From sequence record NC_061444.1: a DNA stretch of 64,000 bases; one strand, written 5' to 3'. Under the pieces are notes generated by a model. That model did not search any database. It worked only from the letters and a program-made list of their open reading frames with translations, and was not told where the DNA came from. Positions within the stretch are counted from its first letter, which is position 1, and every line of letters starts with the position of its first letter. Below, piece after piece: positions 26,011 to 58,782 of this stretch. The position numbers were made by a program, and so were the translations under genes.

Positions 26011-26062
26011 AAATAACTGGACAAAATAGCTATATACACGCGTATGCGCCCTATGATACAAT
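26011..26062 (+). promoter_or_regulatory. Early promoter family, copy 1
   Basis: AAATAACTGGACAAAAT box; TGGACA to TACAAT 33 bp; extended -10 TG. Confidence 0.7.
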
Positions 26063-26098
26063 ATATGCAGACGCTACACGACGTAGCACATACAACTA

Positions 26099-26112
26099 AT
26101 GCTGAGGAGCAT
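26099..26112 (+). promoter_or_regulatory. GAGG-loop RBS hairpin
   Basis: ATGCT-GAGG-AGCAT, ATG at 26116. Confidence 0.65.
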
Positions 26113-26115
26113 ACA

Positions 26116-26460
26116 ATGAACGAAGTCAAACAAGCTGGTCGCGTATTCACTGAATCTGATCGTCAGATGCTGCAAGACCTCGCCGACACACTTAACGCGA
26201 AAATGAAACGTACCGACGCTCGCGTGATCGTTACTGACGGCGCCGAAGATAATCTGATACTTATGGTAGTCGGTTATGAAGACGGTGAAGTCGGTGACGA
26301 GTTTGGTTTCTTCTTAGACCTGCCGTATACAGATGACGCAGGCGAAGACGAGAATTACGTTCTGCACTATGCCGGTTACCCTGATATGAACGACTACACG
26401 TTCCGCACTGTTGACCTAGGCCAGCTTTCTGCTGCAATCGAAGAACTCGACCTGCTGTAA
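26116..26460 (+). CDS. Small acidic protein
   Basis: ORF; start set by RBS. Confidence 0.75.
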   Translation: MNEVKQAGRVFTESDRQMLQDLADTLNAKMKRTDARVIVTDGAEDNLILMVVGYEDGEVGDEFGFFLDLPYTDDAGEDENYVLHYAGYPDMNDYTFRTVDLGQLSAAIEELDLL

Positions 26461-26525
26461 TCGCTAACTGACAATGACTGCGGGGTTACGGCCCCGCCTA
26501 CTTACTTCTATAGAGAGACACGACT

Positions 26526-27146
26526 ATGACTATGCACATCACTACTTTCTTCGTAAAACGCTCTTACGCTTCTCTGGCTGCTGGTTCATTCACTATTGCT
26601 TCTAAGCAAGTGCAAGAGCTGGTGGAGTCTGAGGTATTCATTGTGTATGCTAACACAGGCTTAGGTAACGCCTTCGCTTTACGCAACATCACTCTGACGC
26701 CTGTTGATGAAGCAAACGTGCGTGTTGAGTTCGACCCGCTGACCGACGTTCACGCAATGCCACCGTCAGTGTTGCCGAAAGACGTATTGACCGAAAGCGC
26801 GCAGCAATACTATATGATGCCTGATGATGTTGCTCAGGCCCCTCGCTTCTGCGTATCTAATCACGCATCTGGCAACGAACCAAACATGTTGTGTCTGAAT
26901 CATGAAGTACGTGAGCGTCTGATTCAATATAAAGGCGGCATGATCAGCCTGACAGAGCTTGTGCTTATTCTGCATGAGCAAAACATTTCAGTGACCGACA
27001 TTCACCAGCACCGCCGCAACAAAGAGAAGTATGTGGCGCAAATCACTGAACGCACCTCACACGTTATCGAACTGTCGAAAGACAATGGCGTTAAGCAAGA
27101 CGGTAGCGACTTCCCGCTGCTTGCTCGCCTGAACGTGTATCTCTAA
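26526..27146 (+). CDS. Hypothetical protein, paralog of 27559..28137
   Basis: Colinear similarity along the length, both end in VYL. Confidence 0.8.
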   Translation: MTMHITTFFVKRSYASLAAGSFTIASKQVQELVESEVFIVYANTGLGNAFALRNITLTPVDEANVRVEFDPLTDVHAMPPSVLPKDVLTESAQQYYMMPDDVAQAPRFCVSNHASGNEPNMLCLNHEVRERLIQYKGGMISLTELVLILHEQNISVTDIHQHRRNKEKYVAQITERTSHVIELSKDNGVKQDGSDFPLLARLNVYL

Positions 27147-27150
27147 TCGG

Positions 27151-27202
27151 CAAGTCTTTGGACGAATACGCCATTGAGTTTCGAAACTCAATGGCGTACT
27201 AT
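27151..27202 (+). promoter_or_regulatory. Early promoter family, copy 2
   Basis: TGGACG box 32 bp upstream of TACTAT; TTGAGT -35 lies inside the palindrome. Confidence 0.55.
27167..27198. repeat. Perfect 32-bp palindrome
   Basis: TACGCCATTGAGTTTCGAAACTCAATGGCGTA equals its own reverse complement. Confidence 0.9.
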
Positions 27203-27249
27203 GTAATCCCTAGCGCAATGACGCGCTCAACAACGAAAGAGGCAATATC

Positions 27250-27495
27250 ATGTCAGAGAAACAAATCACACTCGACCTTATCGCAGACGTAGCATCACCA
27301 ACTGAGGTCGTGTTTGAAGACGGCGAGACTTCTACTCAATGGCTCGCACCGTACGATCTGCGCCTGACTGTTTCGCAGACTGTAGGCCCGAACGGCGACC
27401 CTGAAGTAAACATTATCGGTCACGAAGATGACCTGCGCCGCTTCTTAGCAGAAAAACTGCCTGACCTTGACAGTAAACTCGAAGACGTTCGTTAA
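27250..27495 (+). CDS. Small acidic protein
   Basis: 81-aa ORF, GAGG RBS. Confidence 0.7.
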   Translation: MSEKQITLDLIADVASPTEVVFEDGETSTQWLAPYDLRLTVSQTVGPNGDPEVNIIGHEDDLRRFLAEKLPDLDSKLEDVR

Positions 27496-27558
27496 TCGCT
27501 TAACCTGACTGTGGAGTTACGGCGCCACATAATATCAAATCAAATGAGAGACACGACT

Positions 27559-28137
27559 ATGACCATCGCTGCATTTATCAAAACAAACGACACTGTACTG
27601 GCGACTGGCGAGATTCTGATTAAGCGCCCTCACTTCGAAGCGTTATGTGAGTGTGAGATCGCTGTGCTATATACTACAGGTAAAGAGCAAGACAGCGCTA
27701 AAGCCTACGCACTGACTGACCTCATGCTGCATAGTGTAGACAAAGAGCACGTCAAAATCATGTTCGCTGAGAAGACGCCTATCGACGCGTCACTCATTCG
27801 TGAATATCAGTACGATGAAAAAGAAGGCATGGCGATTGAAGTCGAGCAGCCTAAACTGCTGACCAACCTGCCTCGCTTCAACATCGTGTCTGACCTTAGC
27901 GTTGCTGATCGTGTGCGACTGCCTTACGAAGCTCGTATGTGTATCGCGCAGTATGTGTGCGGTCAGTTCAACACTGCGACATTCAAACGTCGCATGACGC
28001 GCATGAACTTCAAGGTTGTGTCTCTGATTACACGAGGCCGCCGCGATGAATCGAAGCCGTACGCAATCTTCCGCCATCGCCTGAGTCAACTTGCTACTAT
28101 CTCTGACGGCAAGAACTCTATGCAGGTCTATCTGTAA
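27559..28137 (+). CDS. Hypothetical protein, paralog of 26526..27146
   Basis: Shares the leader GAGAGACACGACTATGAC and protein similarity. Confidence 0.8.
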   Translation: MTIAAFIKTNDTVLATGEILIKRPHFEALCECEIAVLYTTGKEQDSAKAYALTDLMLHSVDKEHVKIMFAEKTPIDASLIREYQYDEKEGMAIEVEQPKLLTNLPRFNIVSDLSVADRVRLPYEARMCIAQYVCGQFNTATFKRRMTRMNFKVVSLITRGRRDESKPYAIFRHRLSQLATISDGKNSMQVYL

Positions 28138-28140
28138 ACA
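28131..28140 (+). promoter_or_regulatory. TCTGTAAACA motif variant
   Basis: 43 nt upstream of ATG 28184. Confidence 0.4.
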
Positions 28141-28183
28141 ATCATAGCCCACACATCGTGGGCTTTTCTATTTGGAGAATGTT

Positions 28184-28444
28184 ATGATTCACTATACCCG
28201 TGAAGAACTCGAAGAAATGGACGTGACCGAACTCGACGCAATCGCTAACAGCCGCAACCTGCTCGATGACTTCGATGAAGAAGACGATCAAGACGAGCAC
28301 ATGCTGGTGGGTCTGATTCTCGACGACCAGAACGAGCAACGTATGGCAGAAGAAGACGCTGCTGACAAACAACGCGCCGAAGATGATCGTGACCCACGTA
28401 TCAATCGTCGTGAAGACCAAGACGGGTCTGACGACTACTGCTAA
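28184..28444 (+). CDS. Small acidic protein with HEH/Rho-N-like motif
   Basis: YTREELEEMDVTELDAIANSRNL. Confidence 0.7.
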   Translation: MIHYTREELEEMDVTELDAIANSRNLLDDFDEEDDQDEHMLVGLILDDQNEQRMAEEDAADKQRAEDDRDPRINRREDQDGSDDYC

Positions 28445-28457
28445 TAACTCTAAACTC

Positions 28458-28486
28458 AAGGGCTGCCATTGCTGGTGGCCCTTTTT
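28458..28486 (+). terminator. Intrinsic terminator
   Basis: AAGGGCTGCCA-TTGC-TGGTGGCCCTT-TTT. Confidence 0.7.
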
Positions 28487-28490
28487 CATT

Positions 28491-28500
28491 TCTGTAAATA
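28491..28500 (+). promoter_or_regulatory. TCTGTAAATA motif
   Basis: Exact copy right after a terminator, 32 nt before ATG 28533. Confidence 0.55.
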
Positions 28501-28532
28501 TCACGCACACAAACAACAATGCGAGATATACA

Positions 28533-28901
28533 ATGCGCCGTTTCGTTATCGTCTTCAACGTCACTCAGGCAGAGCTTGATGACCGTCGCTTCTTTCAATC
28601 TAAACTCAATATCGTTTCGTCACTGCGCCGCGCTCGCTGTGTCTTTCTCGTCGTTCGTGAAACAAAGCAGGTGCTGTGCGTTTCAGAACTGACCTATCAA
28701 CCAAGTGTAGAGCCAGGCATTCGTCAGGTAGACTTCGATGCACCGCGTGACGTGACCGCGTATGTGCTGCCATTCACCGAACTCACTACGGCTATGGTCA
28801 ACAACTCACAAGACCCAAGCATTCGCTACTTCGGTCGCCAGCTTGAAATGGATGCAGACCAACTCAAGCGCTTCCACACTCAACTGGAGATTGTCGCATG
28901 A
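28533..28901 (+). CDS. Hypothetical protein
   Basis: 122 aa from the ATG after GAGA. Confidence 0.65.
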   Translation: MRRFVIVFNVTQAELDDRRFFQSKLNIVSSLRRARCVFLVVRETKQVLCVSELTYQPSVEPGIRQVDFDAPRDVTAYVLPFTELTTAMVNNSQDPSIRYFGRQLEMDADQLKRFHTQLEIVA

Positions 28902-29143
28902 CTAAACCAACACTAGGCGCTTCTCTTGGTGCTCGCTTCGCTGTCACTTCGAAAGAGAATATCGAGGCGCGTAAGAAACCAAACCCACGTCGTAGTACAT
29001 TGAGCGCAGCAACGACCAAAGAACTGCATAACGCCGTGAACATGCTGGCGATCAAACTCAAGACCACACGCTCTGGTGCTATTGAACGCGCAGTGGCGGA
29101 GCTGTGTGACAAGCATGGCATTGACTACGGGACGCTAGAATGA
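28898..29143 (+). CDS. Ribbon-helix-helix (CopG/MetJ-like) DNA-binding protein
   Basis: STLSAATTKELHNAVNMLAIKLKTTRSGAIERAVAEL fits the RHH strand-helix-helix pattern. Confidence 0.55.
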   Translation: MTKPTLGASLGARFAVTSKENIEARKKPNPRRSTLSAATTKELHNAVNMLAIKLKTTRSGAIERAVAELCDKHGIDYGTLE

Positions 29144-30076: not shown

Positions 30077-30381
30077 AGTATCTGGCCTGTATCGAACTGA
30101 GCACAAGGGAAGGTAATCTGAATCTACCTATCTTACCTAAATGTGATATGCAGGCGTTTCTGCTTGATAGCCGCACTAAAACGAAAGTGCCTATCAAGCT
30201 CAATGCCACAAACGTGGTCAAAGTCTGCGGCAAGACGTGTGGCAGCCTACAGTGGTTCGACTGTATTAATCTGCTTATATGGTCTTCTTTCGAACCAGAG
30301 CGTTTCACGCTGTATATTGAGCGCGTACTCAAAACAGACGAGACTACAGAAGCCCTGCAATCTGCTGAACTCTGCAAATAA
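30064..30381 (+). CDS. Hypothetical protein
   Basis: Part of ORF 29965..30381; start uncertain. Confidence 0.5.
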   Translation: MGNLKYLACIELSTREGNLNLPILPKCDMQAFLLDSRTKTKVPIKLNATNVVKVCGKTCGSLQWFDCINLLIWSSFEPERFTLYIERVLKTDETTEALQSAELCK

Positions 30382-30427
30382 CTGGCTAAAATAGCCGTTT
30401 CATTCAGAGACTGACCTATGTTATAAT
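30376..30427 (+). promoter_or_regulatory. Early promoter family, copy 3
   Basis: AAATAACTGGCTAAAAT; 33 bp to TATAAT; extended -10 TG. Confidence 0.75.
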
Positions 30428-30456
30428 AAACGTGAGCGCAGTGCTCATTACAACAC

Positions 30457-30470
30457 AAGCTGAGGAGCTT
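30457..30470 (+). promoter_or_regulatory. GAGG-loop RBS hairpin
   Basis: AAGCT-GAGG-AGCTT, ATG 30474. Confidence 0.65.
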
Positions 30471-35026: not shown

Positions 35027-35569
35027 ATGGCAAAGTCACTAGGCGTATACATGACGTATATTCTGCGTCATAAGCCTCAGGACATTGGCATCGCAATGGA
35101 CACCCAAGGCTGGGTGTCTGTTCTGGATTTCTTGCAGAAAGCGAAGTACAAAAAGCAAGTGACCAGAGAGATGCTGATCGCAGAAGTAGAAGCGGACGAT
35201 AAAGGTCGTTTTGAGTTTAACTCGAACAAGTCCAAGATTCGTTGTGTTCAAGGTCATTCTGTCGAACACGTCATTCTCAATCTTGCCCCGTGGACTGATT
35301 GTTTGCCTTTGTATCACGGCACCGCTGAAAAGAATATTGCTTCAATCAAGCACGAAGGAATCCTGAAACGCAAACGCAAGCATGTCCATATCAGTAACGA
35401 TATCGAAACAGCAAAGCGTGTTGGTCAACGTCACGGTGTCCCTGTTGTGTTTGAGATCGACACACAGACAATGATTACTCACGGGTACAAGTTCTACAGA
35501 GCAGAGAATGGAGTCATCTTAACTGACCACGTACCTTCTCGCTATATCAGGCTTATGGACGCTAACTAA
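35027..35569 (+). CDS. kptA: RNA 2'-phosphotransferase (Tpt1/KptA family)
   Basis: YILRH.P..IG...D.QGWV, IRC.QGHS, LYHGT, RKHVHIS, NGVILT. Confidence 0.9.
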   Translation: MAKSLGVYMTYILRHKPQDIGIAMDTQGWVSVLDFLQKAKYKKQVTREMLIAEVEADDKGRFEFNSNKSKIRCVQGHSVEHVILNLAPWTDCLPLYHGTAEKNIASIKHEGILKRKRKHVHISNDIETAKRVGQRHGVPVVFEIDTQTMITHGYKFYRAENGVILTDHVPSRYIRLMDAN

Positions 35570-35570
35570 G

Positions 35571-35622
35571 CACAATTCTGGACGAAACAGCCATTCAAGA
35601 CTGGCTCGATTTATGCTATAAT
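35571..35622 (+). promoter_or_regulatory. Early promoter family, copy 4
   Basis: CTGGACGAAA; 32 bp to TATAAT; AGCCA/TGGCT inverted repeat. Confidence 0.7.
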
Positions 35623-35671
35623 AGAGATGAACGCTAGACACTCGTTTAGCTACTTACATGAGGATATGTAT

Positions 35672-37081
35672 ATGAAAAAGATTAAGCACACTTTCCGCCT
35701 GACCGACCTTGTTCGTATCTCCAACGTTCTGCCTGTTACCATGAAGCATTTTGATGGTGCGGGTGAAGAAGCAATCGTCGTTGGTCGTCAGGATGAAAAA
35801 GACGAGTACGCACTACACGTCAAACATCATGGTCGTGTTTCATGGTACCCCGCCGAGTGTTTGAAACTGATCAAACACGATCAGTCTGCACTTCTCGACA
35901 AGTGGGAAGCTGGTAAGTACGGCAAGAAGAAAAAGAAAGAGCGTGAGATCCCTAACGAACTGCGCAACTTCACTGCTATCCTGCCTGTGACCTGTAACGC
36001 TGATTGTGCTTTCTGCCCTGAGAAAGAAATGGAAAACAAAGCGCCGCAGAAAGAGTGGCAAGACAATCTGATGGCTGCAATCAAAACGCACGGCCATCGT
36101 GTCGACCACATATCAATCTCTGGTGGCGAACCTACGCTTCGCATGAAGTATCTGTTCGAAACGATTGATCGTATTCGTGCAGAAGCGGGTATGCACAAAG
36201 TGGGTCTGACTTCTAACGGTCAGTTTCTTGAAAAGCACAACCAGACGATGACGTTCCTCGATCTGAATACAGACGTGATGCTGGAAAGCAAACTGTCGCA
36301 TCTGAATATCAGTCTGCACTCATTCGACCGTGAGAAAGCAAACAAGATTATGGGCGTCAACTATACGTGGACTCTTGATGACCTTGTGCGCTTCCGTCGC
36401 CAGTTAGGTCGCAAGCTGAGTTTCCATATCAACTTCGTTATCAACAAGCAGAACATCGACAACATCGAATGGGAGTTCCGTCAGGCGAACGAACTGATGA
36501 AAGCAAACCCGTGGATCGACGTTGTGTTCCGTGTTGACTACGACAACAAGAAGTTGAGCAAAGAACTGCGCAAGTATGGCATGGCCCATGAAGCGTGGCG
36601 CAACGCTACTCGCGGCTCACAGCGTGACGTTATGGAAGCTGAGAAGAAGTTGAAGAAAAAGCCTGAGCTGATCAAGCTGTTTGATTCTATCTTTGACGGC
36701 AGCTACTACGATGACCTTTTCGACGAGACTATGCCCGGCTTCGACGATACGTTTACTACTGGTTGTCCGTCATGCTTCACGCATCGCAGCGCCGACCTCG
36801 GTAACAGCTTCGCATATCTGAAAGCGTCTTCATACGAACCGAACGAAGACGAAGAAGAATACACCGAAATGGTATTCCACATGGACGGCAACCTGTACTT
36901 CGACTGGTCACGCAAAGAGCCTGTACCAGAAGTGAAAGCCAAGAAGGTAAAAGCGAAGAAAGTGAAGAAGGCGAAGAAAGAAGAACCTAGAGGCTATCCT
37001 GATAGTTGTGAATACACCTCCCAGCGTTGCGGTTATGTTGGTGGTAATGGTCGTTGTGGTTTCGGTAGCGGTATGTGTTAA
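35672..37081 (+). CDS. Radical SAM enzyme with N-terminal SH3-like domain and C-terminal Cys/Gly-rich tail
   Basis: CNADCAFC (CxxxCxxC), ISGGEPT, LTSNG, LNISLH. Confidence 0.85.
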   Translation: MKKIKHTFRLTDLVRISNVLPVTMKHFDGAGEEAIVVGRQDEKDEYALHVKHHGRVSWYPAECLKLIKHDQSALLDKWEAGKYGKKKKKEREIPNELRNFTAILPVTCNADCAFCPEKEMENKAPQKEWQDNLMAAIKTHGHRVDHISISGGEPTLRMKYLFETIDRIRAEAGMHKVGLTSNGQFLEKHNQTMTFLDLNTDVMLESKLSHLNISLHSFDREKANKIMGVNYTWTLDDLVRFRRQLGRKLSFHINFVINKQNIDNIEWEFRQANELMKANPWIDVVFRVDYDNKKLSKELRKYGMAHEAWRNATRGSQRDVMEAEKKLKKKPELIKLFDSIFDGSYYDDLFDETMPGFDDTFTTGCPSCFTHRSADLGNSFAYLKASSYEPNEDEEEYTEMVFHMDGNLYFDWSRKEPVPEVKAKKVKAKKVKKAKKEEPRGYPDSCEYTSQRCGYVGGNGRCGFGSGMC

Positions 37082-38234: not shown

Positions 38235-38498
38235 ATGGCTGTAGGCTTCGTAAAAGACGATGGCGTTAACGATACCATCGAAACAAACGTAATGAACGAG
38301 ATTGACCGTGCTCGTTCAGAACTTCAAGGTGCAGGCTCTGATTACTGCATCAACCCTGACTGCGGTGCTAAGATTCCTGTGATGCGCAAGCTCGCTATGC
38401 CGAACGCGCGTTATTGCATTAACTGTCAGGCAAGTCATGACGGTTCCGCGCATGTTGGCTACAATCGTCGTGGCTCCAAAGATTCTCAATTGAGGTAG
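38235..38498 (+). CDS. DksA/TraR C4 Zn-finger protein, YbiI-like
   Basis: C..PDC...IP..R...P..RYCINCQ and C-terminal GYNRRGSKDSQLR as recalled for E. coli YbiI. Confidence 0.85.
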   Translation: MAVGFVKDDGVNDTIETNVMNEIDRARSELQGAGSDYCINPDCGAKIPVMRKLAMPNARYCINCQASHDGSAHVGYNRRGSKDSQLR

Positions 38499-42308: not shown

Positions 42309-43289
42309 ATGAGATTCGGATTCGCCTGCAAACTAATCGACGAGAAAGGCAAACAACCCTACCCAAACAAAAGTCTAAGCTACAAGCACTTCTCAAAACT
42401 CAGTCTCGATGAACGACGCCAGAAGTTGCGTGAGATCGTGACAGTCAATCTAACGTCGCTGTATGATATGGTTGCTCACGTCGGTATGTTACGCCGAGAC
42501 ATGCGTATGTTTCGAATCACTAGTGAATTACTTCCGTTGTACACGCACCCGCAAGTAACGCATCTTTATCAAGAGCGTGAACTCGCCGCATACATCGAAC
42601 ACTGGTTGTGGAAGTGTGGCACGTTGGCACAGGGTGCTGGCGTTAGACTTTCGTTTCATCCTGGTCAGTTCACGGTACTCGCATCTGATCGACCTGACGT
42701 TGTGCTCAACTCGATTAACGAACTTGAGTACCATGCGTACTGCGCCTATCACATGGGGTATGGTCGTCGCTTTCAAGACTTCAAGATCAACATTCACCTA
42801 AGCGGTAAGCTGGGTGCAAAAGGCTTTCGTGCAGCGCACTCGAAACTTTCTGATCACTGCCGAAAGATGTTGACCGTTGAGAACGACGAGATCACGTCCA
42901 GCATCGAAGACTGTTTAGAACTTGCCGACATATGCCCGATAGTCCTAGATATTCATCATCACTGGGTTATGACAAACGAGTACATACAGCCGAACGATGA
43001 TCGTGTTCAGCGTGTCATAGAGTCATGGCGAGGCATCACGCCTGTTGCTCATTACTCTGTATCTCGCCCAGAGTTCGTGCCGTCACGTGGTATGCCAGAT
43101 CAGAACAAGCTCGCTGCTAATCGTATGCAGTTACGCGCACACTCTGACTACTATCACAATGACGACGTAAACGACTGGGCGCTGACTTTCACTGATTTTG
43201 ACCTTATGTGCGAGTCTAAAGCTAAAAACAGAGCACGTATAAAACTGGCATGTTTTCGTGCGAACTCTGCAAATAACTGGACAAAATAA
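42309..43289 (+). CDS. uvsE: UV-damage endonuclease (UvsE/UVDE)
   Basis: RFGFAC, RLSFHPGQF.VL.S, LTVEND, PIVLDIHHH, HSDY, DLMCESKAK. Confidence 0.9.
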   Translation: MRFGFACKLIDEKGKQPYPNKSLSYKHFSKLSLDERRQKLREIVTVNLTSLYDMVAHVGMLRRDMRMFRITSELLPLYTHPQVTHLYQERELAAYIEHWLWKCGTLAQGAGVRLSFHPGQFTVLASDRPDVVLNSINELEYHAYCAYHMGYGRRFQDFKINIHLSGKLGAKGFRAAHSKLSDHCRKMLTVENDEITSSIEDCLELADICPIVLDIHHHWVMTNEYIQPNDDRVQRVIESWRGITPVAHYSVSRPEFVPSRGMPDQNKLAANRMQLRAHSDYYHNDDVNDWALTFTDFDLMCESKAKNRARIKLACFRANSANNWTK

Positions 43290-43322
43290 GGCTTGTTTCA
43301 GACGATCGCCCTGTGCTACAAT
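43271..43322 (+). promoter_or_regulatory. Early promoter family, copy 5
   Basis: AAATAACTGGACAAAAT; 33 bp to TACAAT; TTGTTT -35. Confidence 0.75.
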
Positions 43323-43377
43323 GTAAGTGAGCACTTTAATCGCGTTTTTCACATATAACTAGACTGAGAAAATAAAC

Positions 43378-45517: not shown

Positions 45518-46704
45518 CCGAACAAACTGAGATCACTGTCGTTGCCCGCCGACTGTTTGAGAAAGGCAGTGTCGAAGTACGTGATGCTTTACGCGCTATC
45601 GCAAACACTGTGCTCGCGCCGAGTCTGGCATTGCAGTATGAAGACAGCGTACCAAGCGTAGAGGCAACATATCGCATTCTGGACGAGATTACGTTCTCGG
45701 GTGACGGTACGCTGCTGCTTCCTGCTGATGATATTTACGCGTTCGATAATCTGCTGAATAAGAAGTGGCGCGGAACATTCTTCAATGCTGTGTCTAACAT
45801 GGCGCTGACTATGTGGTGCACTGACCCACGCACTGCCGGTAAAGGCTTCTGGCCTAAGCAGAACAATGAATGCTGTGAGCTGATCACACGTTCACTTATC
45901 TGGGTGATCGCGCAGCACGGTCTTGAGAATCTTCTCATTAAAGATTCGCCTGTTGTCAGTCACACACGTCTACCGCAGTTTATCATTGCGTTACAGACTG
46001 AGGGTAAAGACGAAGGTTACGCTCGTCACTTTAGCCTGTACAACCCACATGCAGATACAGGCAGTATCAGCACAAACAACATGTGGTCTGACGAATACCG
46101 CGCTGAGTTTGAGCGCAAACTTGTTGAAGGCCGTCCTGCAGAATACGATAGCGTTCGTCATATGGACTTCGACACTCTGGCTGATCTGTGTGAGCGTCTT
46201 AACCTTATTGGGCCGAACGCTACGCCTCGTGGTTGTACTTGCGACGAAGACGAATTTGATTGCGAATGCGACTGTGATGAGGTTATGACGCGTGAGGACT
46301 TCGATAACGACGACGATGAATTGCGTGACGTGTTCTACCAGAAGTACGGTCATCCTGACGACGGCGTTGACTACGACGAGGCCGAATGGATTACAGGCAC
46401 CTCGCTTATGGAAGTTGAAATCGATCTGCCTACTGTGCGTCTGCCTGTGCCTGACATTCCTAAGTCCCAACACCCGCACATGAAGAAGCAAAAGAAAGCG
46501 ATGCCGAAAGCACCACGCAAGCAGGTTATTCTCACTCATGCCCAACAGATCTGGCACGAGCTGGACAGCAAGCATGAGTTCGGTGATCGTCGTTTTGCTA
46601 TCACTCTCGTATCTCGCCACACGTGCGGTATCAATCGCGCTGTAGCAACGAATCGTGAAGCGCTGGCGATTGCATACGCTATCTCGTCGCTAGAAAGCAA
46701 ATAA
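45514..46704 (+). CDS. Hypothetical protein with acidic Cys-rich segment
   Basis: CTCDEDEFDCECDCDE. Confidence 0.75.
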   Translation: MTEQTEITVVARRLFEKGSVEVRDALRAIANTVLAPSLALQYEDSVPSVEATYRILDEITFSGDGTLLLPADDIYAFDNLLNKKWRGTFFNAVSNMALTMWCTDPRTAGKGFWPKQNNECCELITRSLIWVIAQHGLENLLIKDSPVVSHTRLPQFIIALQTEGKDEGYARHFSLYNPHADTGSISTNNMWSDEYRAEFERKLVEGRPAEYDSVRHMDFDTLADLCERLNLIGPNATPRGCTCDEDEFDCECDCDEVMTREDFDNDDDELRDVFYQKYGHPDDGVDYDEAEWITGTSLMEVEIDLPTVRLPVPDIPKSQHPHMKKQKKAMPKAPRKQVILTHAQQIWHELDSKHEFGDRRFAITLVSRHTCGINRAVATNREALAIAYAISSLESK

Positions 46705-46749
46705 CTGGACAAACTAGCGCTTCTATCTGATGCGCTTCTATGATATAAT
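46699..46749 (+). promoter_or_regulatory. Early promoter family, copy 6
   Basis: AAATAACTGGACAAA; 32 bp to TATAAT; AGCGC/GCGCT inverted repeat. Confidence 0.75.
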
Positions 46750-46815
46750 CATAGATAGAGCAATATCGCTCTCAACGTCATTTTTAACTATACGTTTATA
46801 ACGGGAATTGTCACT

Positions 46816-50660: not shown

Positions 50661-50691
50661 AACGGGAGACCTTAACTGGTTTCCCGTTTTT
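50661..50691 (+). terminator. Intrinsic terminator
   Basis: AACGGGAGACC-TTAACT-GGTTTCCCGTT-TTT. Confidence 0.75.
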
Positions 50692-50716: not shown

Positions 50717-51667
50717 ATGACAATGACTAAGACTGCTACCTTCCCGTGGAAAAGTGCTGACCATCGTAACGTGGATTTTGCACTGCGTATCAACAAACTG
50801 AATCTGATGGAAACGTGGAACTACGTCAAGGCGAACAACAAGCCTGACGCAGAAGGTGATGCGCTTCTATCCATGATGCACTACCACTCTACCGAGCACA
50901 TGCGTCAGGTAACAGTGATTGCTCTCTGGTTGTTAGAGCGTGAGTCAGAACAAGCATGGCAGTATGACGTCGGTGCATTACCTCTGGCAGTCGCGTGTAT
51001 GTTCCACGACATGAATCACTCGCTCGGTAAAACTGACGACGAGCAGAACGTGGCCGTAGCCCAAGAGGCATTCAAGAAGTATCTCACTGATACCGAAGAT
51101 CAGCGTATCATCGATCAACAGGACATTATTCTTGAGTTGATCAAAATCACTCAATTCCCATACATGGACACCCGCCAGCCGAAGAATCTGATCGAGCGTT
51201 GCATCCGTGATGCGGATATCCTGTACGGTATGCAAGATGATGTTATCGACTATGTAATGTTTTCGCTTCGCCGTGAGCTGAATCGCCGCCCGAAAACTTC
51301 TACGTTGAAGTATGACCGAGAGCAGTGGGCATCAATGCGCATTGACTTCCTGCTATCTATCGAAATCTATACGCCGACAGCCGAAGCAATCATGGGCTGG
51401 GAGTTGTCTTCGACCAACGACAATGGCCACGAAGATAAATTGCAGGCGTGGGTGAGCGATGACCCTGTGTTCTACGTTACCACCGCAAATGCGTTGAAAG
51501 CGAATGACGTGTTGTTTATCGACACGTCAGAAGATGCAACAACGAAGCGCCGTCTGATCGAGCGCATTACAGACATGGGCGTTGGCTTCAACATCTATTT
51601 CAATGACGGTGACTCGCTTCATCTGCGCAACGGTGAGAAGTGCGTAGCAGTCGAAAGACGCAAATAA
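50717..51667 (+). CDS. HD-domain phosphohydrolase
   Basis: YHSTEH...ACMFHDMNH...RDADIL. Confidence 0.8.
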   Translation: MTMTKTATFPWKSADHRNVDFALRINKLNLMETWNYVKANNKPDAEGDALLSMMHYHSTEHMRQVTVIALWLLERESEQAWQYDVGALPLAVACMFHDMNHSLGKTDDEQNVAVAQEAFKKYLTDTEDQRIIDQQDIILELIKITQFPYMDTRQPKNLIERCIRDADILYGMQDDVIDYVMFSLRRELNRRPKTSTLKYDREQWASMRIDFLLSIEIYTPTAEAIMGWELSSTNDNGHEDKLQAWVSDDPVFYVTTANALKANDVLFIDTSEDATTKRRLIERITDMGVGFNIYFNDGDSLHLRNGEKCVAVERRK

Positions 51668-51712
51668 TAGGCTGAAATCGCCGTACTGTCTAAAGTGCGT
51701 TTATGCTACAAT
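51662..51712 (+). promoter_or_regulatory. Early promoter family, copy 7 (divergent box)
   Basis: AAATAATAGGCTGAAAT; 32 bp to TACAAT; CGTACT/AGTGCG inverted repeat. Confidence 0.55.
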
Positions 51713-51744
51713 ATGCGTAGACGCACTAACAAAGAGAGTTAATC

Positions 51745-52913: not shown

Positions 52914-54509
52914 ATGTCATTCGATATGCGCCAGAACGTACTCATGGTTCGCTCTCTGATTCACGGCCAACCATTCTACAACTTCTACAATGCCGAAGGC
53001 CTGGACTTCACCCTGCCTGGTTATCAACTCAAAGAGATCTATGACCGCCATTTCGAAGGTCGTATGTCTGGCGTCACTACTTACTGGGGGTTCTCGAACA
53101 AGTCAAACTGTGAGACTTTCGAGTTTGCGGATAACGGTGATTTGATGTGGTCAGTTTCTCTGAATGCCACCTGTCACACGCTGTTGCCTCTTGAGATGGT
53201 TATCGGTCACGATGGATTTAACGTCATTAACGGTTTCGAAATCAGCGATCATAAACGAACTGTGATTAAGATTCACCAGAAAGCTGTCGGTCGTACTGTG
53301 GAAAAACTTACGTGGTTCCGCGATATGTCAGAGAATCATATGCGTGAATTGCTGTGTGCTCTTGGTCACGGGCCTATGCGTATCGAACGTGCAGACCGTG
53401 AAGAACTGATCAAGATTCACCGAGATTGGCAGCGCAAGCACGATGAAGAATATAAGTACACGCACAACGCTTGCGGTGTTGACCCTGACGATAAACTCCC
53501 TGCTGACCTGTATGACGATCACGGTAAGTGGTTACGCCAGCGTCACATGGCCAAAGGCAAAACGATTGAGATGATGGCGAGTGAGCTTGCTAACATCGTC
53601 CGCATCTTTGAGCTTGATGATACGGACGACTTTGACCACATGAATCCTGATTGGGATGAAGGTCTGCGTCGTGTCGCACAAGCATTCATCTACGGGCCAA
53701 ACGCCAAAGAGCGCTTCGATGCTGTGAAGTACAATGGTCAGTTTGTTGTTAACGGTATCTACGCCTTAGCAAAAGACCTGAACTGGTTGCATATCAATGA
53801 CGAAACGCGAGACTACCAAGAGTCTCTGATTCGCCGTCTGATGCAAGAACTGAAAAACGAAGTCGAGCGCCCAGGCAGTGTGTTTGTTGTCGAAGAAGGT
53901 AAAGTCTTGTTGAAAGCTGAGTCTGCTGCTGCAACAGATACAGATGTGGTTGACGAGGTAGAAGAAGACGAAGACGAAGATACGTCTATGTCAGAAGAAG
54001 CCGCAGAAGTGCGTACCTTCCTCGGTGGCCTGAGCGACACCAAGTTACGTCACTACGCGAAGCTGTTTAAGTTAGCGAGCACGACGAAGTTACTGCGAAT
54101 GGATCACGCAGCGTTGGTTGACCTGTGTGCTGACTATTGCGGGTCTAACTGGCCGGAAGATTTGGAAGAAGACGAAGTTGAGGCAGAACGCGAGCCGCGC
54201 AAATTCCCTGCTGTATGCGATGACGCGAATATAGCTTACGAGGCCATTCGCAAAGTCCTGTCTTATGCCAAAATCCCTATGTCTCAGTATAGCGGCAAGT
54301 TACGTTCCGGTGTCGTTTCCACACGAGCGGCCGCCCGTAAGAAAGTAATGAGCAGCCTGAAAGATTTTGCCCGCAGCGATGCTCTGAACACTTTGCCTCA
54401 GGTGCATTTGGAGACTCTTGCTTGTGCTCTGACTAAAATGAAAGACGGTGATCGCTACCCTCGTGGTGCCGAGTACCTGAAAGAACTAATTAAACACGCA
54501 CTGCGTTAA
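52914..54509 (+). CDS. Multi-domain protein with HEH-like motifs
   Basis: 531 aa; FRDMSENHMRELL...DREELI and LGGLSDTKLRHYA...DHAALV. Confidence 0.75.
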   Translation: MSFDMRQNVLMVRSLIHGQPFYNFYNAEGLDFTLPGYQLKEIYDRHFEGRMSGVTTYWGFSNKSNCETFEFADNGDLMWSVSLNATCHTLLPLEMVIGHDGFNVINGFEISDHKRTVIKIHQKAVGRTVEKLTWFRDMSENHMRELLCALGHGPMRIERADREELIKIHRDWQRKHDEEYKYTHNACGVDPDDKLPADLYDDHGKWLRQRHMAKGKTIEMMASELANIVRIFELDDTDDFDHMNPDWDEGLRRVAQAFIYGPNAKERFDAVKYNGQFVVNGIYALAKDLNWLHINDETRDYQESLIRRLMQELKNEVERPGSVFVVEEGKVLLKAESAAATDTDVVDEVEEDEDEDTSMSEEAAEVRTFLGGLSDTKLRHYAKLFKLASTTKLLRMDHAALVDLCADYCGSNWPEDLEEDEVEAEREPRKFPAVCDDANIAYEAIRKVLSYAKIPMSQYSGKLRSGVVSTRAAARKKVMSSLKDFARSDALNTLPQVHLETLACALTKMKDGDRYPRGAEYLKELIKHALR

Positions 54510-54544
54510 TCGTCTAATCACACCTAACATTGTAGGGAACAAAA

Positions 54545-54967
54545 ATGAAACTCGAACAAAACATTCTGGTACTGAATCGCATCGCTCTGATTATGGATGA
54601 CGCGCTGGTTCAAAAATGGGGCGAGGCAGCAAACGCTGACCGCGAAGCTGCGCAATATGCAACTGTGGTTATTCTGGCAAAACTCCAGCAGCGTATTCTG
54701 ACCGCTCTGCATAGTGAGAACCCGGAAGCGTGTGCTCGTCCTGAACTTCTTTGGACAGACTATGGCGCTATCTCGATTAGCGGTTTGTTTGTTATCTCGT
54801 CGTCTGCTGATCGTGAAGTGTTGAACCACTACGAAGACCACGACTATCTCAATCATCTGCACACAATTAAACGTGTCGCCGAAGAGAACGGATTCAAGTT
54901 GACTGTCTTCCCTGTGAAAGCAGACTTCCCGTTCACTGGCACTGAGATCCCCGCTGATATGCTATGA
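54545..54967 (+). CDS. Hypothetical protein
   Basis: 140-aa ORF. Confidence 0.7.
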   Translation: MKLEQNILVLNRIALIMDDALVQKWGEAANADREAAQYATVVILAKLQQRILTALHSENPEACARPELLWTDYGAISISGLFVISSSADREVLNHYEDHDYLNHLHTIKRVAEENGFKLTVFPVKADFPFTGTEIPADML

Positions 54968-54998
54968 TGTGACCGAAGCGCATATAGCTCAAGTAAGC

Positions 54999-55050
54999 AA
55001 AAATCTGGACAAAATGAGGCTATCAATCTGATGCCTCCCTGTGATATACT
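54999..55050 (+). promoter_or_regulatory. Early promoter family, copy 8
   Basis: AAAAATCTGGACAAAAT; 33 bp to TATACT; GAGGC-T-ATCA/TGAT-GCCTC hairpin. Confidence 0.75.
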
Positions 55051-55084
55051 AGAAGCGTAGCTTGTGCTGCGCTTTTTTAACTTA

Positions 55085-55098
55085 TGTCTGAGGAGACA
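55085..55098 (+). promoter_or_regulatory. GAGG-loop RBS hairpin
   Basis: TGTCT-GAGG-AGACA, ATG 55104. Confidence 0.65.
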
Positions 55099-55103
55099 AC
55101 AAA

Positions 55104-55565
55104 ATGCTGAACGAAACGAAAGCAACTGTATCTGATATCGAATTGCAGGACCGCATGATGGACGCCGCTGTCCAGAAAGTTATCGAACTGAAACCTGAAT
55201 GGATCGACGTTTGTGCTGCGGGTCTTAGGTTGTATCTGACCGTGTGTAACCAACTCGGTGGCCTGATTCCTGAGATGCGTTTCGTTCACAACAGCAAGCC
55301 ATGCAAGATCTCATTCAACCTGAATGAATCGGCTGACGGTGGCGAGTTCACTGCGAACGATATCGACAAAGACAAGCAGATGGAAATCTGCGATGCTATT
55401 CTTACTGTGGCCGAAGCGAACGAAGAAGGTCATTCGCTGATGGACTTAGCAATTTGTTCAGGCCGCCTGTTCATGATTGGTTATGACGGACTTGCTGGTA
55501 CGGTTGATAAAGTTTGCTTCCGTTATAGCAAGAAAAACTACACTATGAACCTTAAAGGTGAATAA
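55104..55565 (+). CDS. Hypothetical protein
   Basis: 153-aa ORF. Confidence 0.75.
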   Translation: MLNETKATVSDIELQDRMMDAAVQKVIELKPEWIDVCAAGLRLYLTVCNQLGGLIPEMRFVHNSKPCKISFNLNESADGGEFTANDIDKDKQMEICDAILTVAEANEEGHSLMDLAICSGRLFMIGYDGLAGTVDKVCFRYSKKNYTMNLKGE

Positions 55566-56238
55566 CATGAAACCTGACTACACTCTACTGAAACGAAGCA
55601 AAGTCAATCCTGATTATTTTGCTTTTGTGTACGACGGTGACTTGCTTGCTGAGTTCACGCCGAGCAAGTTATATGGTGCATTTGAAAAAGCGCACAAATC
55701 ACCTGAAGTGAAAGAAGTCGATGTGCTGTGGCGTGATGGTACTCGCACCGTTGAGCACCTGGTGGTGCATCGCGTTCGCAAGTTCGTGTCTCTGGACACA
55801 ATCATGAACTACTATTCAGTGTGCCTGATGTTACGCGCTCAAGGCTCTGCTGTTAGTCTGTCTGTGCCTGTGGACGTTCGCACTATGTTCGATGCAGAAG
55901 GCCCAATGATTAGTGAGATTCGCATTGACTGTGATATCGTTGCTGATCTAGTGCGCGAGCTTAAAGCAGTCGTGGTCGAGTGTGATGACTCTAACATGGA
56001 AGACGACGAGTGGGACGACGAAGACGAGGATGAAGACTTCGACGACGAGTTTCACGATATGGAAACCATCGACCCTGCTACTGACCGTATGATGATTAGC
56101 AGTTGGGGATATCGCGCAGAAGACTGGGCAGTGACGCTGACAGACGAAGAAGTTAGCGAGGTACATAGCCTTGAAGTGGGCGTCGATTCTGACATTGAAC
56201 TGCCACTCGCACCTGATGCGAAGGACAAATACTTCTAA
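55558..56238 (+). CDS. Acidic hypothetical protein
   Basis: 226-aa ORF. Confidence 0.75.
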   Translation: MNNMKPDYTLLKRSKVNPDYFAFVYDGDLLAEFTPSKLYGAFEKAHKSPEVKEVDVLWRDGTRTVEHLVVHRVRKFVSLDTIMNYYSVCLMLRAQGSAVSLSVPVDVRTMFDAEGPMISEIRIDCDIVADLVRELKAVVVECDDSNMEDDEWDDEDEDEDFDDEFHDMETIDPATDRMMISSWGYRAEDWAVTLTDEEVSEVHSLEVGVDSDIELPLAPDAKDKYF

Positions 56239-56429
56239 TGAAAACCACAAACGAAATGATCAAAGAGTTGAGACAGCGCGGCGAGCTTGTTATTGAAGAA
56301 CGCCAGAAAGATGTAGTGCCTGACTTAACGTTCACGCTTGATTGTCTGTGTCTCACATACAAGAAGCGGGAAGTGGAAACGACCAAGCGAGGCCGCGTTA
56401 TCACAATCAAGTTGACGAGTATTCACTAA
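56238..56429 (+). CDS. Small hypothetical protein
   Basis: 63 aa, TAATG coupling. Confidence 0.55.
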   Translation: MKTTNEMIKELRQRGELVIEERQKDVVPDLTFTLDCLCLTYKKREVETTKRGRVITIKLTSIH

Positions 56430-56441
56430 CAATCCAGTTTG

Positions 56442-56511
56442 GCTCGCCCGTCCAAAATGCTCACCCCCAATGAGGCGCCCTCGCAGAGGCGTGACGGTGC
56501 GGGTCCTTTTT
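56442..56511 (+). ncRNA. Candidate three-stem structured RNA followed by a U-tract
   Basis: Closing stem 56442-56452 with 56493-56504; two inner hairpins; pairing judged by eye. Confidence 0.35.
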
Positions 56512-56551
56512 AGAGCGTATCTTTAGTGCGTTGCAGAAAGAACCCAAAACA

Positions 56552-56565
56552 AACAGGAGGCTGTT
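56552..56565 (+). promoter_or_regulatory. GAGG-loop RBS hairpin
   Basis: AACAG-GAGG-CTGTT directly before ATG 56566. Confidence 0.6.
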
Positions 56566-57027
56566 ATGAAGTTTAACGAAGTAAGTAAAGATGCTCAGGT
56601 CATTCTCATGGGTGGCGCACTCGCGGGTGTAGTTGAAGTCTTTGGCCGTGATGACGAAGACGAGGGCAAGCATTTGATTGAAACTGCGTTGCGTCAAGTC
56701 GGTCTGACGTTCGACGAGTTCCGTACTCTGATGACCGAAATGTCGCCAGAAGTTGAAGCTGAGGTCGCGTCTATCCAGACAATTGCTGCTGACCCTGACG
56801 ATGACTTCGAAGAAGACCCAGAAGACTTCGGTACATGTCCTGAATGTGATCAGCGTGTAGAAGATTGCGACTGTGAACATGACGACGAAAACCTCGACTC
56901 TATGGAAGAACGTCCCGGCAATCTGAACGATGACGATCAGACTGACGAAAATGGGTGGCAGAATCTCGATGAAGATGGCGTCTGTCGTAACTGTCACCAG
57001 CAAGTGTGCGAGTGCAGAGGTTACTGA
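56566..57027 (+). CDS. Acidic protein with two Cys-rich modules
   Basis: CPECDQRVEDCDC and CRNCHQQVCEC. Confidence 0.75.
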   Translation: MKFNEVSKDAQVILMGGALAGVVEVFGRDDEDEGKHLIETALRQVGLTFDEFRTLMTEMSPEVEAEVASIQTIAADPDDDFEEDPEDFGTCPECDQRVEDCDCEHDDENLDSMEERPGNLNDDDQTDENGWQNLDEDGVCRNCHQQVCECRGY

Positions 57028-57239
57028 TGGGAAGATCGACGCAAGACGAAATCAACGGTCAGATAGCTGCCTCCGAAGAGCAACGTTATAATGAGCAAAT
57101 CGCTCAATACGACGACTGGACAGACGACGAGCTGGCTGACGCTGTAGAAGCTAATGAGCTTGTGCGTGATGACGAAGACGCAAGCGACTACAGCCGCGAA
57201 GCGCTGATTCGAATGCTTATAGCAGATCGACGCTTCTAA
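57027..57239 (+). CDS. Small acidic HEH-like protein
   Basis: YDDWTDDELADAVEANEL...SREALIRML. Confidence 0.65.
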   Translation: MGRSTQDEINGQIAASEEQRYNEQIAQYDDWTDDELADAVEANELVRDDEDASDYSREALIRMLIADRRF

Positions 57240-57241
57240 GC

Positions 57242-57293
57242 AAAAATCTGGACAAAATGAGGGTTGTATCAGAATAGCACCCTAAGCTATACT
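57242..57293 (+). promoter_or_regulatory. Early promoter family, copy 9
   Basis: AAAAATCTGGACAAAAT; 33 bp to TATACT; AGGGT/ACCCT inverted repeat. Confidence 0.7.
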
Positions 57294-57299
57294 ATATAG

Positions 57300-57498
57300 A
57301 CAGTGAGACACGTTCTCTCTGCTATATGCCTTTGTTAATGCTTGACCGTGTGTTTTTCGTTTTCCCGGACACACGGTCCTTTTTAAAGTCGCTTCCTGTG
57401 AGGCTGCTTTAAAAAGGGTTCGATACCCTTTGAGCGCACCGGGCTTTACGCGGTTTCCGCCTTGTGTGCTCTCATGCTAAACCGCAAAGGAAATAGAT
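57300..57498 (+). ncRNA. Long structured 5' leader / candidate cis-regulatory RNA
   Basis: Two 10-bp stems, a T-loop-like hairpin, an 8-bp stem and an alternative pairing next to the RBS. Confidence 0.45.
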
Positions 57499-58227
57499 AT
57501 GCCAAACTTACGTGCTAAACCAGAAGACAAATTCTCTAAAGCTCGTTCTGCGAAGAACTCACCTGAACGTCAGGCTGCTGCTGAGAAGAAACGCACAACC
57601 CCACGCGGTCCGTCTTCTGCTAAACCTCGTCAGTTGCCGCCGGGCTATGGCTATAAGTCAAAAGCTACAGGCGAACGTGCGCCAGAGCGTGACGAAAGAG
57701 AATCCCAGAAACCTAATCTGAGTAAGAAAGAATGGGTTGCTCGTCGTGACGCAACGCCGAAGCTGCGTGATGAAGAACGTGTGTATTTTCTTGTACACGC
57801 AATCTTATCAGCGTGGAAGTTGAGTGCATCTACCGATGCTGATGCAAATGCTACAGGCATCATCAAAGTGTCTCGTCGTAAAGTTGAAGGCGCCTTGCGT
57901 GATCTCAAGAATACGCGCTTCACTAAGATACCGACGCTCATTAACGACGTCCTCGTGTATAACGAAGTCTGCAATGAGTTTGGGCAGTGGGTGTATGTCG
58001 AGCATGACAGTCCGGATTGGATTTTCGTGCGCCTTCCGAAAAACAGCACGCCTGTGATTCGCGCAGATATCGCAGTTGACAGAACAGGCGAAACGCCTAC
58101 CACTGTAACAACCTCAAGTGAGGTGCTGTTGGATAACGGCGGTGACGACGAAGACGAGATTCCTGAAAACGTCGAATATGACGACGAAGACGAATCTCAT
58201 GTACAGGAAGAAGAGGACGAAGAATAA
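57499..58227 (+). CDS. Protein with basic N-terminus and acidic C-terminus
   Basis: 242 aa; AAGGA RBS. Confidence 0.75.
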   Translation: MPNLRAKPEDKFSKARSAKNSPERQAAAEKKRTTPRGPSSAKPRQLPPGYGYKSKATGERAPERDERESQKPNLSKKEWVARRDATPKLRDEERVYFLVHAILSAWKLSASTDADANATGIIKVSRRKVEGALRDLKNTRFTKIPTLINDVLVYNEVCNEFGQWVYVEHDSPDWIFVRLPKNSTPVIRADIAVDRTGETPTTVTTSSEVLLDNGGDDEDEIPENVEYDDEDESHVQEEEDEE

Positions 58228-58676
58228 TGACCTCTTCAATTCGCCCCGCAGCCGAAACTGCTGCAATGATCATCGAAAACGTTTCTCTTTATTCGCAGGA
58301 GAAGTCGCACGAGCACACGCTACCGCGCTTCAAAATGTCAGACACCGCGATACGCCGCATATCTGGGCATTCGCGTCTGCTGCCTGAGAGTTATATCGAA
58401 CAACTCACCGTCGAGCTACAGCAACTTGATTGGTTGATGGCACGATATGACGCTGGCATGTTTATCTTCATGTCGTATGAAGTGGCAAAGAACTGGACGA
58501 CACTGAGCGCGAAACGTGTTGTACCTAACGACGAGCCTGCGTCTGAGTATGATACGTGGACGTTGCCTGAGCTACAGGGGTTCGCTCAACGTAACGACTT
58601 CTTACAGCCTGACGAAGAGGGCTTCAACGATAGAGCGTCACTTGTGCGAGCTATCATGAGAGGCGAGACTCACTAA
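58227..58676 (+). CDS. Protein with C-terminal HEH-like motif
   Basis: YDTWTLPELQGFAQRNDF...DRASLVRAI. Confidence 0.7.
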   Translation: MTSSIRPAAETAAMIIENVSLYSQEKSHEHTLPRFKMSDTAIRRISGHSRLLPESYIEQLTVELQQLDWLMARYDAGMFIFMSYEVAKNWTTLSAKRVVPNDEPASEYDTWTLPELQGFAQRNDFLQPDEEGFNDRASLVRAIMRGETH

Positions 58677-58730
58677 GCAATAACGAGCAGGGGGCTGAAA
58701 TATAGCTGCCCTGCTATCTGCGAAGTATGC

Positions 58731-58782
58731 AGAAATCTGGACAAAATCGTGGTTGCTATCTGAAAGCGACCTATGCTATAAT
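58731..58782 (+). promoter_or_regulatory. Early promoter family, copy 10
   Basis: AGAAATCTGGACAAAAT; 33 bp to TATAAT; TTGCTA -35; GGTTGCT/AGCGACC inverted repeat. Confidence 0.75.

Follow-up and report, generated by a model that had tools for sequence, protein, structure and literature searches.

Twelve copies of a repeated early-gene cassette were found in the genome of the Erwinia jumbo phage pEa_SNUABM_32 (NC_061444.1, 265,891 bp, Alexandravirus), ten of them in the window analysed here, a stretch of 64,000 nt that corresponds to genome positions 186001-250000 and of which a 4-kb piece is 100% identical to the phage genome. Each cassette is probably a compact early-gene unit of the promoter-early stem-loop (PeSL) kind, in which a promoter with an upstream box would be combined with an RNA hairpin of read-through transcripts (hairpin 1) and with another hairpin at the start site (hairpin 2). 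In their sequence layout the cassettes closely resemble the PeSLs of T4-type phages, the general design being known and the lineage and the distinctive box being new. Cassettes and ortholog groups are named by their window coordinates, and a genome coordinate is the window coordinate plus 186000. The analysis provides a first sequence-level map of the early transcription programme in Alexandravirus and the related jumbo phages of the plant pathogens Erwinia and Dickeya, which are used in fire-blight cocktails and whose early genes are almost all unannotated.

All of the ten copies listed in the initial annotation were recovered at their positions, and a scan of the 265,891 bp on both strands with a two-block position weight matrix (PWM) brought the number to 12, namely 11 PWM matches and the degenerate 27151 copy, with the two copies outside the window lying at genome 257471 and 261301. 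All 12 copies are found on the + strand between 212 and 262 kb and none on the - strand, with shuffled genomes giving 0.1-1.2 matches against 11 on the real + strand; because the PWM was trained on these same sites the score is circular, and the restriction to one strand and one region is the meaningful part of this result. The cassettes precede co-oriented small genes, mostly hypothetical, in an ORFan-rich block, and nine of the ten proteins encoded downstream of the window copies have no Pfam family, the remaining one being a radical-SAM protein. The distance from the -10 hexamer to the next start codon ranges from 38 to 211 nt, and in six of the ten window copies the upstream gene has its stop codon in the box or ≤5 nt from it (30376, 35571, 43271, 46699, 51662 and 57242). 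A literature search returned neither the box sequence in a phage context nor a description of Alexandravirus promoters. A pattern scan of IMG/VR yielded contigs of ~260 kb among its matches, of which five were considered, two having two matches each, while the rest look like chance.

The anatomy of the cassettes was deduced from an alignment of 71-74 distinct copies from eight Alexandravirus genomes. The promoter proper is the extended -10 element TRTGnTAtAAT, with T-12, A-11, A-9 and T-7 of the hexamer being invariant and T-17, T-15 and G-14 nearly so, whilst the -35 is reduced to an invariant T-36 followed by T/A-35. The TG that had been described as usual stands one base before the hexamer in eight of the ten window copies, the exceptions being 27151 and 57242. 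A reading of the cassettes as sigma70-type promoters that rely on the extended -10 is supported by this pattern, and a standard -35/-10 scan recovers just two of the ten sites because the -35 is weak. That the host sigma70 enzyme would serve these promoters, as was proposed at the outset, agrees with the conservation of the extended -10, with the co-oriented small genes and with the phage group concerned. pEa_SNUABM_32 is a member of the PaBG/Lu11 group of jumbo phages, for which sigma-factor genes are reported, and the excerpt of that report available to us describes no phage RNA polymerase gene (PMC7412058); going by that excerpt, the early genes must be read by the host enzyme.

The conserved box extends from -66 to -42, about 25 bp in length. 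The invariant or nearly invariant upstream positions are A-66, A-65, T-63, G-60, C-59, A-58, A-56, T-51, G-50, G-49, C-47, A-45 to A-43, T-42 and T-36. Its TGGACA core had been placed 32-33 bp from the TAnnnT hexamer and set apart from the -35; the spacing is indeed near-fixed, with a slightly wider measured range of 31-33 nt, and the separate weak -35, marked by T-36 and then T/A, bears out the distinction. An upstream extension (CTGCGAA..TGCA) is present, as had been described, in four copies, 26011, 30376, 43271 and 58731. The box also holds A-tracts at -58 to -53 and -46 to -43, one helical turn apart. An UP element consists of A/T only from -59 to -38, with an A-tract at -46 to -41 and AWWWWWTTTTT at -57 to -47; the A-tracts of the box fit this pattern, but CTGGAC at -52 to -47 and GC at -60/-59 are invariant. 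UP elements are reportedly the subject of Estrem et al. 1998/1999, and Wilkens and Rueger are said to have described T4 early promoters, in which A-tracts lie near -42 and -52. The cassettes share with both the A-runs, spaced by one helical turn and preceding a strong early promoter of a phage, and they differ from UP elements in the invariant G-60, C-59, G-50 and G-49, in having CTGGAC where UP elements have a T-tract, in a conservation that reaches out to -66, and in a core that differs between phage genera. An UP-like or activator site is a plausible reading of the box.

Several other identities of the box were tried and rejected. A promoter of sigmaE (RpoE) or another extracytoplasmic function sigma factor (GGAC..TCTGA here; GGAACTT, 16 nt, TCTGA as the model) does not suit, as the GG-to-TCTGA distance is 19-20 nt, 3 nt too short (the spacing is 23 in degP and rpoH P3), and TCTGA is not kept among the 46699 orthologs. 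For sigma54, or for TGGACA as a displaced -35, no suitable partner element lies at the right spacing. None of the known sites of the host factors CRP, Fis, IHF, LexA, MarA and PhoB, which count as leads rather than tests, fits the box.

Comparison across phage genera revealed that the core of the box changes with the lineage. All Alexandravirus copies have CTGGAC, and those seen in the Dickeya phage JA29 (Salmondvirus) all have GTGTCC; in JA29 at least six cassettes consist of AACTCTGCAAA, three variable bases, GTGTCC and AAAAT, with the core 33 nt from the -10, as in Alexandravirus; the -10 region of the copy at 18310 reads AATCTGTAAAAT. The orthologous promoters of topoisomerase II carry TGGACA in pEa_SNUABM_32, TGTCCA in JA29, TGGTCA in Yoloswag and CGGCTG in the Yersinia phage fHe-Yen9-02, with the distal AACTCTGCAAA common to all four genera, and this comparison found nothing comparable to the cassette box in Pseudomonas phage Lu11. 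That TGTCCA is the reverse complement of TGGACA speaks for a box that is read as duplex DNA. Moreover, a single D. solani strain is host to both AD1 (Alexandravirus, CTGGAC) and JA29 (GTGTCC), which differ in the core, and hence the host alone does not determine the core. A genus-specific core on a shared host strain, taken together with the invariant G-60, C-59, G-50 and G-49, speaks more for a specific factor than for a plain UP element, and a sequence-specific protein acting at the box with alpha-domain contacts is the favoured candidate. Only tentatively would we go further and regard the box as the operator of a dedicated transcription factor, co-evolving with the phage lineage and either delivered with the virion or made early, which might switch host-sigma70 early promoters on or off. 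The lineage-specific core is a tractable candidate site for a new regulator. The distal half of the box, AACTCTGCAAA, resembles the second promoter motif of these phages. This second repeated motif, AATCTGTAAATA, precedes start codons by 30-70 nt on either strand in the replication and structural regions, with 18 copies on + and nine on - genome-wide and five copies in the window against 0.28 expected. It probably marks another class of promoters, middle or late, and its TAAATA is T4-late-like.

The inverted repeats between the box and the -10 were then compared with chance. All of the arm pairs listed in the initial annotation are present, two of them (58731 and 51662) with a T:G mismatch, and 27167-27198 is a perfect 32-nt palindrome as had been claimed. 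Hairpin 1 is centred near -29, with arms that are typically 5-8 bp and loops of 5-14 nt. Spacers fold better than their shuffles, with z ranging from -2.1 to -6.3 across five genomes, and in a half-swap test the 5' and 3' spacer halves taken from different sites fold worse than the native pairs, the native value being reached in 0/2000, 48/2000, 1/2000, 135/2000 and 47/2000 permutations in the five genomes. Since native halves beat chimeras, the complementarity is specific to each site and is not a property of the consensus. Against shuffled spacers the repeats therefore stand beyond chance overall; an excess is confined to just six of the 11 ortholog groups (46699, 58731, 54999, 51662, 57242 and 71471), and the five groups with no excess are 26011, 30376, 35571 (on average), 43271 and 75301, among which are the three copies whose repeat had rightly been called weak (26011, 30376 and 43271).

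The evolution of the arms points in the same direction. In the 46699 orthologs of eight phages the arms AGCGCTTC/GAGGCGCT are constant while the 5-nt loop varies (TATCT, AATTC, TTCGT, TTCGC), and the ortholog in pEa_SNUABM_30 has the 3' arm GGGGCGCT, which pairs only via two U·G. The 58731 orthologs display four different arm pairs, all foldable and each with a T:G on the + strand, and arms were swapped for new complementary pairs in the 58731, 54999 and 51662 groups. The folding excess is larger on the + strand than on the - strand in all of the six hairpin-bearing groups, G·U pairs amount to 67/362 on the + strand versus 20/285 on the - strand, and a symmetric scoring, in which G:T and A:C count equally, finds 42 G:T and 10 A:C in the stems, compared with 18.7 and 13.9 in shuffles. 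The variable inverted repeats thus have the look of hairpins formed by read-through RNA rather than of cruciforms in the DNA.

A second variable hairpin, which the initial annotation did not contain, was detected at the predicted start site, where it begins between -3 and +4 and exceeds shuffles in ten of the 11 groups. A compensatory change from GACGC/GCGTC to GGTGC/GCACC was observed in the 58731 group, and the arms are replaced wholesale in the 35571 and 57242 groups. Such a hairpin fits a 5'-terminal stabilising stem-loop. According to Emory, Bouvet and Belasco 1992, 5'-terminal stem-loops are said to stabilise E. coli mRNAs such as ompA; hairpin 2 is like these in beginning a few bases from the predicted 5' end, and unlike them in that the 54999 hairpin carries a terminator-like U run. 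In the latter the predicted start lies within the 5' arm, so this hairpin could be folded by upstream transcripts only. Further inverted repeats, at 46737-46755 and 51694-51727, enclose the -10 hexamer, and the arms of the former change in concert in pEa_SNUABM_30 (CTGCTAT/ATAGCAG).

The hairpins were also assessed for the shape of an intrinsic terminator. Two window copies, 30383-30397 and 51682-51699, passed a terminator scan. A G+C-rich hairpin with a U tract is found at these two places, at 55055-55078, in two orthologs of 46699, those of AD1 and pEa_SNUABM_30, where hairpin 1 is followed by TTTTCTGC, and in JA29, where the hairpin is followed by TCGTTTTG, though not in most hairpin-1 copies; in AD1, pEa_SNUABM_30 and JA29 the T run after some copies overlaps the TG of the extended -10. 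As the stem is mostly followed by CCTATG, attenuation or protection of a 3' end would be likelier than full termination. The strength of hairpin 1 showed no clean pattern when set against the presence of an upstream canonical terminator or the distance of the upstream stop codon, and a canonical upstream terminator and a weak repeat come together only at 26011. Canonical strong intrinsic terminators, with G+C-rich stems of 8-11 bp and a T run, occur in the early block at 25915-25934, 28458-28483 and 50661-50688, so the phage also employs ordinary terminators.

Put together, the reading that we prefer is as follows. Host RNA polymerase with sigma70 would initiate about 7 nt past the hexamer at TRTGnTAtAAT, aided by the residual -35, while the box (-66 to -42) would act as duplex DNA, its A-tracts being placed where the alpha C-terminal domains would dock and its invariant G/C positions being most likely read by a sequence-specific phage or host protein that boosts the promoters or later shuts them off. 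Hairpin 1 lies upstream of the cassette's own start and can therefore exist as RNA only in transcripts from the upstream gene, and the strand asymmetry suggests that it does form in such read-through transcripts, which it may attenuate or terminate, or whose 3' end it may protect. Each cassette would thereby insulate and restart transcription, and hairpin 2, at about +1, would provide the new mRNA with a stabilising 5'-terminal stem-loop, with the 54999 copy possibly acting also as a terminator-like element for upstream transcripts.

Several points weigh against this reading. Five of the 11 groups have no hairpin 1, which is consequently not essential to the promoter, and most hairpin-1 copies have no proper U tract after the stem (CCTATG..), which makes efficient termination doubtful. 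A paired t-test of the + against the - strand over all 11 groups gives p = 0.16, with only the six hairpin-bearing groups being consistent, and the counts behind the sense-strand bias come from related sequences that represent few independent events. The public runs with matching sequence, all of them low-depth metagenome or metatranscriptome contigs, displayed no accumulation of ends, and zero transcript starts or ends were observed for any cassette.

The initial annotation had taken the inverted repeat for a structural, supercoil-sensing part of the promoter, which would extrude over the -35 as a cruciform or hairpin of the DNA and be akin to the hairpin promoters of phage N4. A site-specific repeat at a fixed place near -29 would suit such an element, the weak -35 leaves room for another upstream feature to matter, and the palindrome at 27167-27198 reaches -15 kcal/mol as single-stranded DNA on both strands. 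A cruciform, however, requires Watson-Crick pairing on both strands and short loops, and is not supported on either count. Arms of 5-8 bp around loops of 5-14 nt give single-stranded DNA energies of only -2 to -6 kcal/mol, several of them no better than shuffles, and the - strand of 58731 reaches just -1.7 kcal/mol; G:T far exceeds A:C in the stems, G·U pairing is retained in the sense strand only, and some orthologs pair through U·G alone. The palindrome itself is not conserved, its pairing in the pEa_SNUABM_30 ortholog being limited to the outer 8 bp, and the repeat is absent from nearly half of the groups. N4 early hairpins have stems of 5-7 bp, 3-nt loops and a conserved sequence, and are located beside the start site, where the virion RNA polymerase reads them. 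The cassettes have in common with them a short inverted repeat within a phage early promoter, and differ in the longer loops, the variable arms, the centre at -29, the G·U-tolerant pairing and the host sigma70-type -10; a short, stable, small-loop hairpin with complementarity on both strands was not found. The analogy is a poor fit, with the T4-type PeSLs offering a close precedent, and we consider a cruciform element very unlikely.

The box and the hairpin could also be a single RNA signal in the upstream transcript, such as a nut-like antitermination site or an RNase processing site, given that a conserved linear box stands directly 5' of a sense-strand RNA-type hairpin, that the loop is often TCTGA or TCAGA and that all copies are co-oriented with transcription. 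This is unlikely, as the loops of the 46699 orthologs vary, the exchange of TGGACA for its reverse complement in JA29 at an equal distance is sensible only for duplex DNA, the distance from the box to the -10 is fixed even where there is no hairpin, and an Rfam search of the window returned no family. Tandem promoters, in which the distal box CTCTGCAAATAA would be a AATCTGTAAATA-related start signal for a phage sigma holoenzyme, with starts near -46 and hairpin 1 becoming 5'-terminal, would explain why a sense-strand RNA hairpin directly follows the box. The distal box is separated from AATCTGTAAATA by one inserted base and one T-to-C change, AATCTGTAAATA stands before many genes on both strands, and the PaBG group encodes sigma factors according to the excerpt of the report (PMC7412058). 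Nevertheless, C-59 is invariant in 71/71 sites where AATCTGTAAATA has T, CTG precedes GCA in only about half of the copies, and it would be left unexplained why TGGAC..AAAT, downstream of the supposed -10, is so strongly conserved, which makes tandem promoters quite unlikely. The repeats might, lastly, have no regulatory role and be by-products of duplication or recombination, or recombination sites only. Their absence from five groups is compatible with this, PeSLs have been proposed as recombination sites (PMC2839356), and genome breakpoints touch a cassette in 28/121 pairwise homology gaps, about 2-3x expectation, in a count whose events are non-independent and in which other intergenic sites were not compared. 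It is an improbable account of arms that stay constant while loops drift in the 46699 group, of new complementary arm pairs in the 58731, 54999 and 51662 groups, and of the site-specific pairing in the half-swap test.

Of the known systems, PeSLs are thus the nearest to the units proposed here. PeSL cassettes occur in the T4-type phages RB49, phi1, PST and nt-1 (PMC2839356, PMC4122927). In these, the upstream gene has its stop codon within an A/T-rich stretch, to which are added a strong sigma70 promoter and a stem-loop that contains G-T pairs and is positioned between or over the -35 and -10 or beside the start site; PeSLs precede ORFans in variable regions, and one PeSL stem-loop showed termination equal to that of rrnB T1 (PMC2839356). 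Similarly, the present cassettes are intergenic units, each roughly 100 bp long, that recur in a variable region rich in ORFans. The upstream gene has its stop codon within an A/T-rich stretch, the early promoter is of the sigma70 type, a stem-loop whose sequence varies and which includes G-T pairs sits around the -35/-10 or the start site, and the 3' end carries the Shine-Dalgarno sequence and the start codon. They differ in belonging to an unrelated phage lineage (Alexandravirus, PaBG/Lu11 group), in a -35 that is nearly absent and replaced by the TRTG extended -10, in a 25-bp box with invariant G/C positions in place of a mere A/T-rich stretch, in stems that are not polyG/polyC, and in having two hairpins in most copies. 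Four of six PeSL criteria were found by sequence, namely the promoter consensus, the stop-codon stretch, the variable stem-loop and the ORFan clustering, with the stem-loop represented by hairpin 1 in 6/11 and hairpin 2 in 10/11 groups and by extra repeats at the -10 and in the box (30383-30397). Cassette-mediated gene shuffling is only suggested by the breakpoints. A PeSL-like design in a lineage unrelated to T4 suggests that, where accessory genes form long co-oriented arrays, a convergent pressure exists to insulate transcription and start it anew, and the cassettes offer compact, probably strong promoter parts for Enterobacterales. The coordinates of all copies in the window, as well as those of the related elements, are provided in Table 1.

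Table 1. Cassettes of the window with their predicted parts, and related elements (window coordinates, except for JA29)
Feature	Position	Strand	Box	Hairpin 1 (spacer repeat)	-10 element	Hairpin 2 (start site)	Neighbourhood and other features
Cassette 1	26009-26087	+	26009-26027	weak	TGATACAAT 26054-62	26073-26087	predicted to drive gp256 (start 26116); canonical terminator 25915-25934 upstream
Cassette 2	27149-27227	+	degenerate, TTTGGACGAAT	perfect 32-nt palindrome 27167-27198, extending into the -10	TACTAT 27197-27202, no TG	27212-27227	predicted to drive gp258
Cassette 3	30374-30448	+	with gp265 stop codon; variant TGGCT		TGTTATAAT 30419-27	30432-30448	TGGCT of box pairs with nearby downstream AGCC: hairpin 30383-30397, T-rich tail
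Cassette 4	35569-35650	+	35569-35587	35589-35606 (AGCCA/TGGCT)	TGCTATAAT 35614-22	35633-35650	predicted to drive radical-SAM protein (35672-37081)
Cassette 5	43269-43343	+	43269-43287	weak	TGCTACAAT 43314-22	weak, then T run	box overlaps 3' end of endonuclease gene gp289
Cassette 6	46697-46779	+	46697-46715, with gp296 stop codon	46716-46736	TGATATAAT 46741-49	within 46754-46779	extra inverted repeat around -10, 46737-46755
Cassette 7	51660-51727	+	variant TAGGCTGAAAT	51682-51699, TTTAT tail	TGCTACAAT 51704-12		alternative 13-bp hairpin 51694-51727, enclosing -10
Cassette 8	54997-55078	+	54997-55015	55016-55037 (GAGGC/GCCTC)	TGATATACT 55042-50	55055-55078, with TTTTTT	hairpin 2 of intrinsic-terminator shape; predicted start site in its 5' arm
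Cassette 9	57240-57324	+	57240-57258	57260-57283 (AGGGT/ACCCT)	TATACT 57288-93, no TG	57297-57324	~200-nt leader to gp316 (start 57499)
Cassette 10	58729-58805	+	58729-58747, plus upstream CTGCGAAGTATGCA extension	58748-58775 (GGTTGCT/AGCGACC, one T:G)	TGCTATAAT 58774-82	58790-58805 (GACGCA/TGCGTC)	
JA29 cassettes	6815, 10789, 18310, 20016, 20175, 31505		GTGTCC core				
AATCTGTAAATA copies	4213-4224, 15661-15672, 21105-21116, 21899-21910						
AATCTGTAAATA copy	8766-8777	-					

Some further observations were made around the cassettes. The leader before gp316 (57300-57499) contains no open reading frame >28 amino acids, and several relatives have a gap of similar length before the downstream gene. 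One relative in the public runs lacks 201 bp (57027-57229), the deletion stopping 11 nt short of the cassette 9 box, and sequence near-identical to 54000-59500 (0.8-0.96 of sampled words) was encountered in unrelated metagenomes, among them those of money, tobacco, manure, compost and wastewater.

Two features of the early proteins were also recorded. The 9- to 11-mers that occur most often in the genome are repeats of GAAGAC and GACGAA, which encode Asp/Glu-rich tracts, as at the C-terminus of gp316 (59775-60290) and likewise in many other early genes. At 38235-38498 on the + strand, an early protein of 87 amino acids with a DksA/TraR C4 zinc finger is encoded (Pfam E = 4.6e-08, above cutoff), which could act on host RNA polymerase.

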